Shown here: piece after piece, positions 15,097 through 20,952 of the stretch
Numbering within the stretch: position 1 is the first letter of the stretch
Layout of the letters: every line of letters begins with the position of its first letter
Source: Vitrella brassicaformis CCMP3155
Taxonomy: Eukaryota; Protista; Chromerida
Direction: 5' to 3'
Assembly: GCA_001179505.1 (NCBI GenBank)
Contig: CDMY01000254.1
Span: 1-64,000, forward strand
Length of the DNA: 64,000 bases
Position numbers and translations under genes: made by a program
Notes under the pieces: model-generated
Told to the model about the DNA's origin: nothing
The model's database searches: none
What the model saw: the letters and a program-made list of their open reading frames with translations, nothing else

Positions 15097-15350
15097 GTGG
15101 CGGCCCGATTCGTCGTGAAACGCTTCTAAAATCGGCTCTCCTCTTGAGTGTGAATCTCCGCTGGTGAGCAACAGCACTGGTGTGGGGTGACCCTTTGTTT
15201 TTTCAGTTCGACCGTGATCGACCGTTTTGTCTGACCGCACGCCTTCCGTCTGAGAGAGACGACGACCGTGCTGAAGTGTCAGCCCGATTCGCGGACAACA
15301 CGCGAGTTAAACACAACAACCAACCAACCAACCAAGCAGCGAGAGATCCA

Positions 15351-17060
15351 ATGTCGTTGAGCGAGTATGAGGTGGTGGCCACGAGTCCCGAGGCCGTACG
15401 ACTTCGTGTCATTCGTCCTGACGACATCCCCGAGCACAGCGAGCCGCTAGATCCGCAGGCAGTCGAGAGCGCGCGACAGATCCTCGATGAAGTCAAGAAG
15501 GCGGGGAGAGCGGCGGTAGTCAAGTATGCGCTCAAGTTCGGGGACATCGGCAGCGACAGCGAGAGGCTCATCTACACGCGGGAGGATCTGAAGGACGCCT
15601 ATGAGGGCCTTCCTGGTACGCAGCAAGGGCTGCTCATGCGGGTGGCGTCGCGGATCCGACGGTTCGCTGAAGCGCAAAGGGCTTCGGTCAATGCAATGCA
15701 GGTGAGATGTTGATAGACAAGACAAACTCAAATGGACGCACGTTCGTTTGATCTGCAGATATCCGTTCCGGGGGGCTTTGCGGGTCAGTCTGTGGTGCCC
15801 GTCGAAGCAGCAGGGTGCTATGCGCCCGGAGGCAGATACCCACTCCCCTCTTCTGTCCTGATGACGGCCATCACTGCTCGAGTGGCAGGAGTCAGCCACG
15901 TTGTGGTCGCTTCCCCTAAGCCGTCTGCCGTGACGAAAGCCACAGCATACATCGCTGGCGCAGATGCATTGCTGGGCATTGGCGGTCCCGCAGCAATTGG
16001 TGCGCTGACGTATGGCGTGACCGATCTTGGTGTCCCTCCTTGCAACGTCATCGTGGGACCCGGCAACAAGTACGTAGCTGCGGCCAAGGGGCTGGTCAAC
16101 GGCACGGTCGGCATCGACATGATCGCTGGACCGTCTGAGCTGCTAGTCATCTCTGACGAGAAGGCCGACCCGAGGTGAGGAGAAGCGAGGGCTGAGATAT
16201 CTCCACATGTCGTGCTCTTTGTTCCAGAGTGGTTGCGAGTGACTTGTTGGCTCAAGCAGAGCACGACACGGTTGCCCGTGTGGTGCTCGTGACGACCTGC
16301 GCCTCCCTCATCCCGGCTGTGGAACAACAACTCACGCAACAACTGGCGGTGAGAAACAGGAAAACGCCAAGGGTGTTTCTCACCCGTGGTAGTGTCTTTC
16401 AGGTATTGCCAACTCGCGACGTGGCCTCGGAGGCGTTGAAAAACTCCTTCTGTCTGTTGGCCGGCTCGACTGAGGAGGCCATTGACATCGCCGACAAGAT
16501 CGCACCGGAACACCTCGAGGTCAGGAGACGCTATAAAGGGACACTTAGCTCATACGTGCCTTTAATACAGCGAGCGACTCGGTTGCGTTGTGCAGGTGGT
16601 GACAGAGGACGCCGAGGGTGTGTCTCGTCGCCTGAAGAACTACGGTGGCCTGTTCATTGGCAACAGTGCAGCGGAGGTGCTGGGCGACTACGGCATCGGA
16701 CCCAACCACACCCTTCCCACATCAGGGACGGCCAAGTACACAGGTGAGTGAAGTGTTCGGTGGTACACAATTTGATGTGGCTCTGTGTGGCTGCCTGCCT
16801 CTGCAGGTGGCCTGTCTGTCTTCAACTTTTTGCGGATACGGACGTGGCTGAACATTCATGACTTGCACGACCCAACCTGCCAGCAGGCAGTCAGGTGATG
16901 TGTATACGGTGCAGGCGGCGCATACCGAACATCGATGCGTTTCCGCTTTGCAGGGACTCAGTTGACTTGGCCGAGCTGGAGGGCCTGGTCGGCCACTCAC
17001 GATCAGCCCGATGCCGCCTGACGAACCAGTCGTCCCTCACCCCCCCTGCACCTTCTATCC
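15351..17060 (+). CDS. hisD: Histidinol dehydrogenase domain of the fusion
   Basis: GCYAPGGRYPLPSSVLM, GPGNKYV, IDMIAGPSE, DLLAQAEHD, APEHLE, LGDYGIGPNHTLPTSG, AELEGLVGHSRSA. Confidence 0.96.
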
Positions 17061-20000
17061 GGGTGCAGCAGAGCGAGTCGCCTACCCCAGACACACAGGT
17101 TACTAGCGCATCTCTCTCACAACTAGATCACCTAGCAGACACAAACGCTGGAAAACTACAGGTAAAGCGGCAGGCAGATTGACGCACATCCGCACATGAA
17201 ATGCATGCGCAAAGAAGGGAGTCTGTGCATCCATGTGTGGTTGTGTCTGGTGTCAGCGCTTGATCCGTCCGGACGTGGGCAGCTTGATGGCCTACACCCC
17301 CGTCAAGCCCCTCGATGTGGTGGCTGAGGAGATAGGCGTGCCCATCGACGACCTCTGCAAGCTAGACGCCAATGAGAACATATACGGCATACAGTCAGAC
17401 GTCGTGCACCAAATTATGGTAAGACAGATGCAGTTGCGTACGATGGCTGTTGTTCCTCTGCGTTTGTCTCTCTGTTCAGGCCAGCAGTCGTGCAATGCAC
17501 ATTTATCCCGACCCCGACCAAAATGCACTCAGGGACATGCTCAGCAAGTTCACAAAAAGGTATCAGCAGATGCAGTTCCGAGTACTCTTGCCTTCAAATT
17601 GATATGTATTGTGCACATGCAGGCCTCGTGAGGAGATCGTGTGTGGTGCCGGCGCTGATGACATGATCGACCTGATCATCAGGATAGTGCATCCACGGAA
17701 GATTGTCATCCCGACACCGACATTCCCCATGTTCAAGTTCTTCGCACTCATTCTTCGGTGACTTCTGATCAATCACGTACAACAGGCACAACCACATCTC
17801 ACTGCCAATGCCTGTGTGCTGCAGCTGCGAGGTTGTGGAGGTCCCCCTTTCCCCCCCTCCCTCGTTCTCTCTGCCCCTGCAGCAGATGCTCGAAGAGATC
17901 CGGAGAGGAGCATCGCTGGTCTTTGTCGCGTCCCCAAACAATCCCACTGGCAAATCTGTGGCGCGAGCGCAACTGGAGACACTACTGAAGGAGGAGTGCA
18001 TTGTCGTTGTCGACGAGGCATACATCGAGTTTTCCGACAAGGGTGATGTCACTGATATGATGGACAAGTGGGTCACGAGACAATGGATCGGTCTGAGGAA
18101 TAGAAGACCTTTCTTCGATGCGTCCCTTGTTGTGTGCAGGTACCCGAACTTGGTGATACTGCGCACTTTCTCAAAGTGGGGTGCAATGGCCGGCCTGCGA
18201 TGCGGATACGGTCTCTTCCACCCACTACTCGCGGACAGAATCAGACAGGTCAGTGGCGAGCTCGGCAATATGGATATGAATCGCGACAGTTGCTCTGTTG
18301 TTATCAGATCAAGATCCCCTACAACGTGAGCGTCGCAGCCGAGTCAGCTGCACGGGCATCGCTGCAGCACTTCGAGGTGCTCGCGCAGCAGATCGACCGC
18401 ATCAAGGCCGAGCGTTACCGACTGCTGTCCATCATCAAGTCCTCCCCGCAGCTGCACTTCCTCCATCCGTATGACAGCGACACCAACTTCATCCTCTGCA
18501 AGGTGGATCCAGGCAGCGCAGAAGGCCTAAGGGATCAACTGAGGAAGAGAGGCGTGCTCGTCAGGTGAGGCCGCAGATACAGTGTCAACGGGTCGACGTT
18601 TTGTTGGTGTCCTCAGGTACTACGCGACAGGCATGCTCAAGAACTTCATTCGTATCAGCTGCGGTCGACCTGAGGACACGGATCGCCTCATTCGTGAGCT
18701 GTGTACGCTGCCTCTATTCGCGTCGGAAGGGGGACTGCCCCTGCCTCCACAGATTCCCCCAAAACCACTCAAAACGACGCCCACGGGTCAGCAGAAAATA
18801 AAGAAAGGGCATGGGAGACGGTCACTTTCATCTTTGTTTTTCCAGCTTTGTTGTTTGACATGGATGGGGTCCTTGCTGACGTGTCCCAGTCGTACAGAAA
18901 GGTTAGCAAGATGCACTTCCTCCGCAAGTGACAGTCTCCACTCACGTGCCAATGCTTGTCCGCTCCAGGCCACTCTCTTGGCAGCCGAGAAGTACGGGGC
19001 CAAGTGCAGCAGTGAGGACATAGTGGCCATGAAACGACAGGGCAACGCAAACAACGATTGGATACTCACGCAAAGGCTCATCAAGTCGAAGACGGAGCGA
19101 GAGGTCAGATCTATTGGTGGGACGGGTAGACGTGCGATGTCAGATTTCCATCGCCTGGTGCAGGTTCCTTACGATGACGTGGTGGCATCGTTCCAAGAGT
19201 ACTACAACGTCGCCAAGGCGAGCGAGAAGTGCATCATCCCCTTACCTGTATTGGAAAGCCTGAGGGCGCAAGGCACGCTGCTGGCCGTCGTCACGGGCAG
19301 ACCAAGGTACACGAGGGAGGGTAGTACATTGATAGACGTATGGATGCACGGTCGGTCATGATGCATCAATCCTTATCCTATACCGACTCGACAGAATGAG
19401 GTCCATACATTCGACACTTTGCCTGAACGAATGACTATGTTACACATCATGAATGCCGCCACAGCCAAGATGCATACAGTCAAAGTTTTTTTGTGTGTTC
19501 TTTAGGACCGAGGCTGAGTATTTTCTGAGCGAGCATGGGCTGCGTGGGGTATTCTCCGTCATTGTGACAATGGAGGACGGACCCCCCAAGCCCGACCCTG
19601 GACCCGTGCTTTTGGTGAGTCTTCGGAGGGCAGGATGCGTTGGCGTCTGACCACGTGATTGCATGTAATCTCCTTTCTCTGTAGGCCCTGGACCACCTGG
19701 GCTTGGTGTCGTCGGGCATCGAGGGTTGGGTTGGGATGATCGGCGACACACCTGACGACATCCGCAGTGCAGTGGCGGCACACAAGCACCTCCAGCAGCA
19801 GTCCTCTTGTGCGATCGATGTCATGGGCATGGGGGTGCTGACTCCTGAGGAAGCACAGAAGGACAGGTAGCCTCCGGGCGCGAGGAGGGTGACAGCACAC
19901 ATGCATGCACGTGTTTTCCATGCTTCAGGTCGCATCGCATAGCTGCAACTGACTGTCTGGTTGAGGCCGGGGCAGTGCGCGTAGCCAGGACATACGAGTA

Positions 20001-20952
20001 AGCACAGGAAGAAGAGGATAGCGACTAGCTGAGATGGTGCCAAACTGATCCACACGTATATGATATTGCGTTGCAGTGACTTGTTGCCCTACATTTTGCC
20101 CACCACCAGCTCCCCGCCGCTGGTTCACAGTCACGACGTCTCTGGTGCCGCCGGCTTCACTGACCGTCAGAGCATGCGTATCGGGGAGGTGTCGCGGACG
20201 ACCAAAGAGACCAAGATATCCTGCCGTGTGTGCCTTGGTGGGTCGGGCAAGGCGGACGTCAACACTGGTGTGGGCTTCTTCGATCACATGCTGCAGCAGC
20301 TCGCCAAGCACGGACGCTTTGACATCAGGTGAATGATAAAGAAGACAGCGAGACAGTGTGTGAGCACGAAGGAAATCCTGTGTGCAGCCTCAATTGCGCG
20401 GGTGATCTGCACATTGACGACCATCACACTGTGGAGGACTGTTCGATCGCACTCGGCACCTGCTTTGACAAGGCACTGGGTAGTCGCGGTGGCATCAACC
20501 GGTTCGGCACGGCTTACGCGCCTCTTGACGAGAGCCTGGCACGAGCAGTGGTGGACCTGTCGGGCAGGGGACACTCGGAAGTGCACATACCTTTCGAGCG
20601 GGAAAAGGTGCGGGAAGGAATCGTATCTACCCTCGCCCCACATATCTGCTGTTCTCCTTCGAAGGTCGGCACGTTGTCGACGGAGATGGTGAGCCACATT
20701 TTCTATTCTCTGGCCAGCGCCATGAAGGCCACCATCCACATCGATCTGATTCGGGGTGTCAACACGCACCACAAGGTAGACGGCATGAAATGCAACAGCC
20801 GCACCAGACGACCATTGCCTTTGTCATCCCAACCTTCACTATTCCTTGCGCAGGTCGAGTGCAGCTTCAAGGCATTCGCTCAAGCATTGCGGACAGCCTG
20901 CTCCATAACGAGAGCGGCAACAGACATCCCGTCAACAAAGGGAATGCTGTGA
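15351..20952 (+). CDS. Multifunctional histidine-biosynthesis protein: HisD - HisC - HAD phosphatase - imidazoleglycerol-phosphate dehydratase, one multi-exon gene
   Basis: All three inter-domain junctions splice in frame via GT-AG introns: 17162-17256 (phase 0, ...GKLQ|RLIRPDV), 18787-18845 (phase 1, ...TPT|ALLFDMDG), and ~19999-20077 (...RTYD|DLLPYILP...TKETKI). Stop GML* at 20952. Confidence 0.9.
17257..18720 (+). CDS. hisC: Histidinol-phosphate aminotransferase domain of the fusion
   Basis: KLDANEN, GAGADDMID, SPNNPTG, VVVDEAYIEF, PLP-lysine motif LRTFSKWGAMAGLRCGY, PYNVS, SDTNFIL, IRISCG. Confidence 0.96.
18846..20060 (+). CDS. HAD-superfamily (capped, subfamily IA-like) hydrolase domain of the fusion
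   Basis: Motif I LLFDMDGVLADVSQSYR, cap with GNANNDW, motif II VVTGRP, motif III MEDGPPKPDP, motif IV MIGDTPDD. Confidence 0.9.
20170..20952 (+). CDS. hisB: Imidazoleglycerol-phosphate dehydratase domain of the fusion
   Basis: SRTTKETKI, TGVGFFDHML, HIDDHHTVED, RFGTAYAPLDESLA, STEMVSHIF, NTHHK|VECSFKAF, PSTKGML*. Confidence 0.97.

Follow-up and report, generated by a model that had tools for sequence, protein, structure and literature searches.

The window analysed here comprises positions 1-64,000 of the forward strand of contig CDMY01000254.1 from Vitrella brassicaformis CCMP3155 (GCA_001179505.1). Spliced transcript contigs and their translation reveal one gene in it with the domain order HisD-HisC-HAD-IGPD (Table 1). 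After splicing, its HAD domain comprises 235 amino acids encoded by six exons and lies in frame between the HisC and IGPD parts. The preliminary description had drawn this domain from 18846 to 20060. The first HAD exon indeed starts exactly at 18846, whereas position 20060 falls inside the intron that precedes the IGPD part, and the domain ends at 19997.

Table 1. Domains, exons, linkers and introns of the four-domain gene, in window coordinates
Feature	Position	Strand	Evidence
HisD (histidinol dehydrogenase) domain, N-terminal part of the fusion; several exons, given as a whole block and not exon by exon	15351..17029	+	ORF translations; tblastn queries: a bacterial HisD and a HisD-HisC protein of eukaryotic origin
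Linker with open frame behind HisD; next comes intron 17162-17256	17030..17161	+	Frame open to 17161
HisC (histidinol-phosphate aminotransferase) domain	17257..18700	+	Spliced translation; junctions; tblastn
HisC introns, confirmed	17758-17824, 18068-18139, 18249-18307, 18565-18616	+	Contig junctions
Pro-rich linker joining HisC to HAD; next comes intron 18787-18845	18701..18786	+	Contigs; spliced translation
HAD exon 1: motif I DMDGV at 18857-18871 (nucleophile D5; D7), S-Y-R signature (Y17, R18)	18846..18901	+	
HAD exon 2: cap helices with I37, K41 and GNANNDW (D49)	18969..19103	+	
60-nt in-frame intron, stop-free, removed in transcripts	19104..19163	+	Contigs
HAD exon 3: cap end (Y78, E85), shortened family G..GLW loop, motif II VVTGRPR	19164..19306	+	
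HAD exon 4: motif III Lys (KPDP)	19506..19614	+	
HAD exon 5: motif IV GDTPDD and a short lineage-specific insert	19685..19866	+	
HAD exon 6: C-terminal helix and strand of the Rossmann core	19929..19997	+	
Last intron between the HAD and IGPD parts	19998-20076	+	Contigs
Linker and IGPD (imidazoleglycerol-phosphate dehydratase) domain; stop codon 20950-20952	20077..20952	+	Contigs; translation
Introns in the linker/IGPD part	20329-20387, 20608-20664, 20776-20853	+	Contig junctions

The HAD domain is real, expressed and intact. Contigs without introns, from two RNA-like runs, contain all of its GT..AG junctions, and an unspliced form of the region is present in two DNA runs. Each RNA-like run contains one intron-less contig (2764 and 2462 nt, respectively) that reads from HisC through HAD into IGPD with no stop, which agrees with the earlier placement of the HAD between these two enzymes. 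The HisD-to-HisC junction (17161|17257) is likewise in frame, and contigs from both run X1 and run X2 cross it. One could still argue that faulty assembly or annotation has created the four-domain reading and that HisD-HisC and HAD-IGPD are separate genes, since no single transcript contig covers the gene from end to end (short, low-depth pieces are all that represents its HisD part) and a gene caller made two genes on a related metagenome contig, L082. That split, however, sits at an intron within HisC and is thus a calling error. With HisC, HAD and IGPD spanned by one contig in each of two runs, and with separate contigs crossing the HisD-HisC junction, we consider two separate genes very improbable; the phosphatase assignment is unaffected either way.

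When we compared the spliced protein with the invariant columns of its family, we found all motifs of the HAD superfamily, namely DxD (DMDGV), S/T (VVTGRP), K (KPDP) and (G)DxxxD (GDTPDD). These motifs, as well as the cap sequence GNANNDW, are present just as the preliminary description had listed them. About 100 residues separate D7 of motif I from T108 of motif II, in line with a C1 helical cap insertion. For the closest relative, P0011 (46% identical), the AlphaFold model (pLDDT 93.8) displays six helices in residues 22-107, and its best structural matches (Foldseek, VIA-align) are C1-capped HAD-IA enzymes with Z of 21-23, all of this being evidence from a model of the relative and not of the window protein. 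The matches include phosphoglycolate phosphatases, the BT2127 pyrophosphatase, beta-phosphoglucomutase and AlnB. Because all of them are generic C1-capped HADs, they do not indicate the function.

Among the NCBIfam models, TIGR01548 is the best for every HAD exon. Separate exons score 26.3, 33.9 and 22.0 bits, to be read against a cut-off (140.2 bits) that applies to whole proteins, the window domain having been scored exon by exon (22-34 bits each). The nearest relatives pass this cut-off with 141-170 bits, and the likeness to TIGR01548 that had been proposed earlier is thus borne out. In blastp, the spliced domain aligns with TIGR01548-family proteins over residues 1-235 with 40-46% identity and E values as low as 2e-57; by these statistics the whole-length match is not due to chance. 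The domain keeps 23 of 23 family-invariant columns, is identical in 47 of the 52 columns with a conservation of 90% or more, and carries the family signature DxDGVxxDVSxSYR, K..GxANNDW, VTGRPR, KPxP and GDTxDD. On the evidence of these columns, it is a member of the TIGR01548 family (HAD-SF-IA-hyp1, a 'hypothetical equivalog' with no function in its name), namely a divergent eukaryotic one.

This divergence is visible at five conserved columns, where the window copy lacks the G..GLW cap loop and has changed L to C and A to S. The copy scores 234 bits against the family profile built here, compared with a median of 312 for typical members. Both the low score and the loss of part of the conserved cap loop would suit a domain that has no catalytic activity or plays a mainly structural part, as a spacer or scaffold between HisC and IGPD. 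Yet every catalytic motif and every invariant family residue is intact, splicing of the exons is precise and keeps the frame, and the TIGR01548 family also has stand-alone members, for which a spacer role is impossible. We therefore regard a dead or merely structural domain as highly unlikely.

TIGR01656, the model for the E. coli HisB-N type (DDDD, GmhB-like; cut-off 84 bits), gave weak, second-rank matches, with 18.8 bits for exon 1 and 39-58 bits for the relatives, always below TIGR01548. The HisB-N type is expected to have a capless core and a Zn loop, whereas the window domain has a large cap. Using the longest HAD exon as query, we obtained no phmmer match among PDB sequences and weak matches only in a word-index search. 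An exhaustive representative search returned 20 matches, the window's own protein not among them. The best PDB sequence match of the family profile is 6iah_A ('Hydrolase', 240 aa, E 1.4e-20), which we take to be Tt82 of Thermococcus thioreducens. It carries S-Y-D...R...D, as in the toHisN fingerprint, and 6IAH is absent from the top structural matches of the P0011 model.

The genomic surroundings of the relatives point to histidine biosynthesis. Among the 80 best-matching bacterial genome loci, hisB lies no more than 400 bp downstream of the HAD relative in 76, and HisC and the HAD share one ORF in 67; his neighbours are absent at four. Prokaryotic homologues thus do lie beside his genes, a point on which the preliminary description had left a question. 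In the Myxococcota locus L004, the order is hisG, hisC::HAD, hisB, hisH, hisA, hisF-hisIE, hisD, so that all histidine steps are encoded and the HAD is the sole phosphatase. Most of the closest TIGR01548 relatives are HisC fusions, the representative search contained both HisC-HAD and HAD-IGPD types, and this HAD occurs together with PF00155 in at least 1644 long proteins. We also observed HisC-HAD-HisD (in pathway order), HisC-HAD-IGPD, HisIE-HisC-HAD and oomycete HAD-IGPD fusions, and an uncultured eukaryote displays the identical four-domain order HisD-HisC-HAD-IGPD. In a eukaryotic subgroup of the P0022 type, the HAD is fused instead to an unassigned region of ~500 amino acids. In the literature on TIGR01548, HisC-HAD fusions and the eukaryotic versions, we found this arrangement nowhere described.

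The toHisN protein of Thermococcus onnurineus is said to have been described by Lee et al. in 2008 as an archaeal C1-capped HAD histidinol-phosphate phosphatase. Its counterpart nmHisN (Nitrosopumilus maritimus Nmar_1556) is a capped HAD whose gene lies between hisC and hisB; it is specific for histidinol phosphate and rejected nine other phosphoesters, and mutation of its fingerprint residues to alanine lowered kcat/KM 200- to 4000-fold (Kinateder et al. 2024, PMC10804674). We retrieved 120 metagenome loci with the pattern D.DGV..DV...YD. At 54 of these, HisC and IGPD closely flank the match, upstream and downstream respectively, and at 42 more one flank was seen, the contig being too short for the other. 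The dominant protein of these loci has 308 amino acids with Y24, D25 and I28 in nmHisN numbering, and it is by gene context and these numbered residues, not by the published nmHisN sequence, that we define the nmHisN-like set. The best NCBIfam model for its proteins is TIGR01548 (64-79 bits, versus 38 for the next), and hhalign matches the group to the TIGR01548 family over 222 columns, cap included, with a probability of 99.6% and an E of 5e-24. By this comparison of profiles, the TIGR01548 family turns out to be a sister of the nmHisN-type archaeal histidinol-phosphate phosphatase.

The same alignment pairs Y with Y, D with R, I with I, K with K and E with D. The nmHisN fingerprint Y24-D25-K56-E64 (Y-D-R-D in toHisN) corresponds to Y17, R18, K41 and D49 in the window domain, that is, three of the four positions are identical or conservative and position 25 is an arginine. 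Of the accessory positions, nmHisN I52 is kept as I37, and the I28 position is occupied by a threonine. The window domain has in common with nmHisN and toHisN a HAD core into which one helical cap is inserted behind motif I, the N-terminal DxDGVxxDVxxSY, the K...G....D/E cap motif, the fingerprint tyrosine, isoleucine, lysine and acidic residue, and the place between hisC and hisB (here HisC-HAD-IGPD in one polypeptide). By contrast, it has Arg for Asp at fingerprint position 25, a cap that is ~80 residues shorter (six helices in the model of the relative, versus nine reported), and a location inside a four-enzyme eukaryotic polypeptide, whereas nmHisN and toHisN stand alone. Kinateder et al. 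noted that Arg at position 25, also found in their cluster II and in delta-proteobacterial groups, makes the assignment of such clusters questionable, and predicted the same function for delta-proteobacterial homologues with a Y-R-K-D fingerprint (Kinateder et al. 2024, PMC10804674). With nmHisN and toHisN known and this prediction made, the family is not wholly uncharacterised any more, which corrects the earlier expectation that a function would be assigned to a poorly characterised family.

We conclude that the domain at 18846-19997 is most probably (roughly 85%) a Mg-dependent, C1-capped HAD of the TIGR01548 family that serves as the L-histidinol-phosphate phosphatase (EC 3.1.3.15) of the organism, as suggested when it was first singled out as a candidate for the only late step missing from the fusion. 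This role is strongly supported by comparative genomics rather than enzymology, because fusions with histidine enzymes recur, the operon position between hisC and hisB is conserved, and the domain is homologous to the verified nmHisN type. Since the TIGR01548 family is a sister of that type, the domain is very probably the pathway's missing phosphatase and not a new kind of enzyme. It is a new eukaryotic, fused member of the nmHisN-type phosphatases, an idea partly anticipated in 2024. For substrate and catalysis we infer the following arrangement. Asp5 of DMDGV would attack the phosphate and Asp7 would act as general acid/base, and Thr108, Lys140 and the acids of GDTPDD would keep phosphate and Mg2+ in place. 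The cap residues Tyr17, Arg18, Ile37, Lys41 and Asp49, the putative counterparts of nmHisN Y24, D25, L/I52, K56 and E64, may close over the imidazole-amino-alcohol moiety.

Alternatively, the HAD could be a working phosphatase that acts on some other substrate or on a broad range of them (for instance phosphoglycolate, phosphoserine or sugar phosphates, or imidazole-glycerol or imidazole-acetol phosphate in a clean-up reaction), with histidinol phosphate hydrolysed by an enzyme encoded elsewhere in the genome. The generic C1-capped fold of the relative's model would permit this, phosphoglycolate phosphatase models are among the secondary NCBIfam matches of the relatives, and the D25-to-R replacement, the shortened cap loop and the threonine at the I28 position could change specificity. 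However, at hundreds of independent loci the only phosphatase that lies between hisC and hisB, or is fused to histidine enzymes, is a TIGR01548 HAD; the L004 operon would have no step 8 without it; and the cap signature is common to the specific nmHisN. A different substrate therefore appears unlikely, and histidinol phosphate is the one we favour.

Other solutions to the same reaction help to place this phosphatase. The bifunctional E. coli HisB (HisN-IGPD) likewise has a HAD-type histidinol-phosphate phosphatase fused directly upstream of IGPD, a logic repeated in the oomycete HAD-IGPD proteins. Its HAD, however, is capless, DDDD-type (TIGR01656) and GmhB-like with a Zn-binding loop, and the fusion is of independent origin. 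Pseudomonas paHisN (PA0335), a phosphoserine-phosphatase-like HAD (Price et al. 2018, PMC5764234; Kinateder 2023/2024), is another HAD taken up for this reaction, but it has a different cap architecture and the fingerprint D16-D18-Y47, and is not the family nearest to the window domain. PHP-type (yeast HIS2, Bacillus HisK) and IMPase-type (plant HISN7, actinobacterial HisN) enzymes perform the reaction with unrelated folds, and we found neither type in the fusion or, as far as examined, in the window. The enzymes named in the preliminary description (HisN, HIS2 and HISN7) are all known ones, in a list that omits paHisN, toHisN and nmHisN. Yeast HIS4 (HisIE-HisD) and the heptafunctional protein of Acanthamoeba (PMC6029752) likewise unite several histidine enzymes in one eukaryotic polypeptide, but from other domain sets, without HisC, phosphatase or IGPD; in Acanthamoeba, seven activities are fused and IGPD is separate, unlike in the window fusion.

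With its order HisD-HisC-HAD-IGPD, the polypeptide would therefore carry histidine steps 6 (IGPD), 7 (HisC), 8 (HAD) and 9-10 (HisD). We think it probable, with somewhat less confidence than for the window domain itself, that the Arg-variant TIGR01548 clade as a whole is the long-missing histidinol-phosphate phosphatase across a large part of the tree (Myxococcota, Planctomycetota, Gemmatimonadota, Acidobacteriota, others, and many protists and algae, comprising chromerids, oomycetes, cryptophytes and amoebozoans), that it here completes a single polypeptide for the five final reactions, steps 6-10, and that the HisC-HAD order would allow histidinol phosphate to be handed over, should there be any channelling between the domains.

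Histidinol-phosphate phosphatase is the one enzyme of histidine synthesis that has arisen anew many times, and even now no unexplained gap is as common. According to GapMind 2026, which leaves the 2024 nmHisN work uncited, it is not accounted for in 20% of prototrophic prokaryotes (PMC13759103). In the NCBI 2026 model library, TIGR01548 is still a hypothetical equivalog, and because it bears no function label, thousands of HisC-HAD fusions are named only 'aminotransferase' or 'TIGR01548 family hydrolase'. To a specialist, our result will be expected after 2024 rather than startling. Its value lies in the tie between TIGR01548 and nmHisN, drawn from profile comparison and gene context, which is a concrete and cheaply testable hypothesis. 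If true, it would make re-annotation possible in several phyla as well as in many algae and protists among the eukaryotes, and the four-domain protein would offer a natural construct for coupling studies of the last histidine enzymes.

The window is eukaryotic DNA (G+C ~55%) with numerous short GT..AG introns, in which open frames for HisD, HisC, a HAD domain and IGPD follow one another in that order on the + strand at ~15.35-20.95 kb. We predicted the HAD exons from sequence first and then compared them with public sequencing runs. Intron-less contigs of 2764 and 2462 nt in two RNA-like runs, which span HisC and the HAD domain and reach into IGPD, omit precisely the predicted introns, and the unspliced form is present as a 6664-nt contig in two DNA runs. 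The junctions listed for the fusion gene are GT..AG throughout (15/15), and the spliced frame is free of stops from HisC up to the stop codon at 20950-20952. The HisD-HisC junction (17161|17257) is likewise in frame, crossed by contigs separate from those that join HisC, HAD and IGPD. The transcript contigs and the open spliced frame confirm the preliminary description in placing the HAD domain between HisC and IGPD; of the limits it gave, 18846-20060, the start is a true exon start, and the end falls inside the last intron. The domain comprises 235 residues in six exons. One intron inside its cap (19104-19163) is 60 nt long, in frame and stop-free, and is absent from the transcripts; gene models based on open reading frames or protein homology would read through it and acquire 20 spurious residues.

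Exons of the HAD domain in the fusion gene
Feature	Position	Strand	Evidence
HAD exon 1	18846-18901	+	sequence prediction + transcript contigs
HAD exon 2	18969-19103	+	sequence prediction + transcript contigs
HAD exon 3	19164-19306	+	sequence prediction + transcript contigs
HAD exon 4	19506-19614	+	sequence prediction + transcript contigs
HAD exon 5	19685-19866	+	sequence prediction + transcript contigs
HAD exon 6	19929-19997	+	sequence prediction + transcript contigs

Just 5' of the HisD exon and at its start, the DNA runs yielded several short contigs with many loose ends and 3- to 6-fold higher depth over 15171-15347, and a repeat at 15308-15347 was skipped in the read search. Together, these features suggest that the 5' end of the fusion gene holds a short, dispersed repeat.

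TIGR01548 is the top NCBIfam model for each HAD exon, with single exons scoring far under its 140.2-bit cut-off, and Pfam returned generic HAD families only. Queried with the exon that encodes the cap, an exhaustive representative search retrieved 20 proteins, most of ~570-660 aa and aligning near residue 400, the exception being a 412-aa protein that aligns at its N-terminus. Family scans identified these as HisC joined to a TIGR01548 HAD (141-170 bits, above the cut-off), along with one HAD-IGPD protein. The spliced window domain is 40-46% identical to family members over its full length (best E 2e-57) and keeps 23/23 invariant columns and 47/52 columns conserved at ≥90%, its departures being the lost G..GL in one loop of the cap plus two changes, both conservative. 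By sequence it is a somewhat divergent family member, and the resemblance to TIGR01548 in the preliminary description was well founded. So was its assignment as a capped IA-type HAD: the structure predicted with high confidence for its closest relative (pLDDT 93.8) has a Rossmann core and a six-helix C1 cap. Structure searches with this model returned generic C1-capped HAD-IA enzymes only, and the fold alone is uninformative on substrate.

A link to function comes from Nmar_1556 of Nitrosopumilus maritimus (nmHisN), a capped HAD encoded between hisC and hisB that acts on histidinol phosphate with a kcat/KM of ~1.1e4 M-1 s-1 and hydrolyses none of nine other phosphoesters (Kinateder et al., Protein Sci 2024, PMC10804674). 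Its fingerprint is Y24-D25-K56-E64, with accessory residues I28 and I/L52; D25A lowers kcat/KM ~220-fold, and euryarchaeal and delta-proteobacterial homologues with Arg at position 25 were called 'likely' HolPases (PMC10804674). We gathered nmHisN-like proteins from metagenomes by a DNA pattern for D.DGV..DV...YD, and recognised them as such by gene context and residue numbering. HisC lies just upstream and IGPD just downstream at 54/120 loci, and another 42/120 show one flank with no room for the other. In the dominant protein (308 aa), Y24, D25 and I28 fall on the very positions published for nmHisN. TIGR01548 is the best NCBIfam model for this group (64-79 bits versus 38 for the next), and hhalign aligns it with the TIGR01548 family over 222 columns (probability 99.6%, E 5e-24), pairing Y-Y, D25-R, I28-I, K-K and the acidic residue with D. 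The window carries Y17, R18, T21, I37, K41 and D49 at the fingerprint and accessory positions, differing from nmHisN in Arg for D25, Thr for I28 and Asp for E64. Against PDB sequences, the family profile matched 6iah_A best, whose S-Y-D...R...D resembles the fingerprint of toHisN from Thermococcus onnurineus. A third, shorter S-Y-D HAD type (~242-267 aa) adjoins hisC at three metagenome loci (L113, L139, L201); its one NCBIfam match was TIGR01548 (64 bits), and it may be the Thermococcales/toHisN-like group.

The preliminary description had proposed looking for his genes beside prokaryotic homologues, and at most of the best loci they are there. Scanning one genome per species confirmed at least 562 relatives; at the best 80 of these (Myxococcota, Planctomycetota, Gemmatimonadota, Acidobacteriota, Sumerlaeota and others) we searched for neighbours, using HisC, IGPD and HisD from the window as queries. 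At these loci HisC and HAD share a single ORF in 67/80, hisB lies ≤400 bp downstream of HAD in 76/80, HisC-HAD-IGPD forms one ORF in 1/80, and four have no his neighbour by these queries. A Myxococcota locus reads hisG, hisC::HAD, hisB, hisH, hisA, hisF-hisIE, hisD, which makes a complete set of histidine enzymes with the HAD counted as the phosphatase and is one step short otherwise. Stand-alone bacterial TIGR01548 genes at L066, L069, L078 and L059 have neither hisC nor hisB within 6 kb, except for hisB 1.4 kb away in L059; their products may have a differing role, or else the genomes concerned may have scattered his genes.

Profile and domain-restricted searches listed 2475 shorter family members and at least 1644 longer ones, the latter nearly all HisC-HAD. 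Further fusions are HisIE-HisC-HAD, HisC-HAD-IGPD and HisC-HAD-HisD, the last covering steps 7 to 10 in the order of the pathway. One HisC-HAD-HisD protein (1036 aa; L081:3904-8043, GCA_014466255.1, contig JACLAC010024970.1) is followed directly by hisG on the opposite strand; the assembly is low in GC (38%) and, with a protein kinase nearby, looks eukaryotic. Named eukaryotes with family members include Phytophthora, Stygamoeba, Hemiselmis and Incisomonas, and the oomycete Thraustotheca has a HAD-IGPD fusion. In an ENA metagenome contig with eukaryotic neighbours (k141_415334, L082:1610-5581), the gene caller gave 'HisD-HisC' beside 'HAD-IGPD'; read directly, the DNA places this split at an intron within HisC, and therefore the four domains form one gene in that organism too, as they do in the window. 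What had looked like a 110-aa 'N-terminal extension' in its product P0030 is in fact the C-terminal part of HisC. Neighbouring genes there encode a hydroxyproline arabinosyltransferase-like protein and a Na/H exchanger. In a quick, unrooted FastTree of 164 HAD domains, from which we drew no inference on origin, the window domain clusters with its closest relative (P0011) and the L082 HAD-IGPD pair (local support 90), nested in a clade (support 97) with all named eukaryotes and zero bacterial genome loci. The P0022 cluster of eukaryotic plankton proteins (P0156-P0160; ~775-925 aa) breaks with the his-gene association: its TIGR01548-type HAD occupies residues 120-320, and the ~500 residues that follow have no Pfam or NCBIfam match.

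Gene context, fusions and the profile link to nmHisN support well the earlier proposal of a histidinol-phosphate phosphatase, and we predict this activity for the window domain, a member with Arg at the position where D25A is costly to nmHisN. The known phosphatases named with that proposal omitted paHisN, toHisN and nmHisN. Owing to the 2024 work, which makes no mention of eukaryotes (PMC10804674), the window HAD is not a new kind of enzyme; it would add a eukaryotic, fused case to an established type. The assignment has practical value nonetheless: TIGR01548 was left unnamed in NCBIfam 2026, and hisN is still the most frequent gap in GapMind 2026 (PMC13759103).
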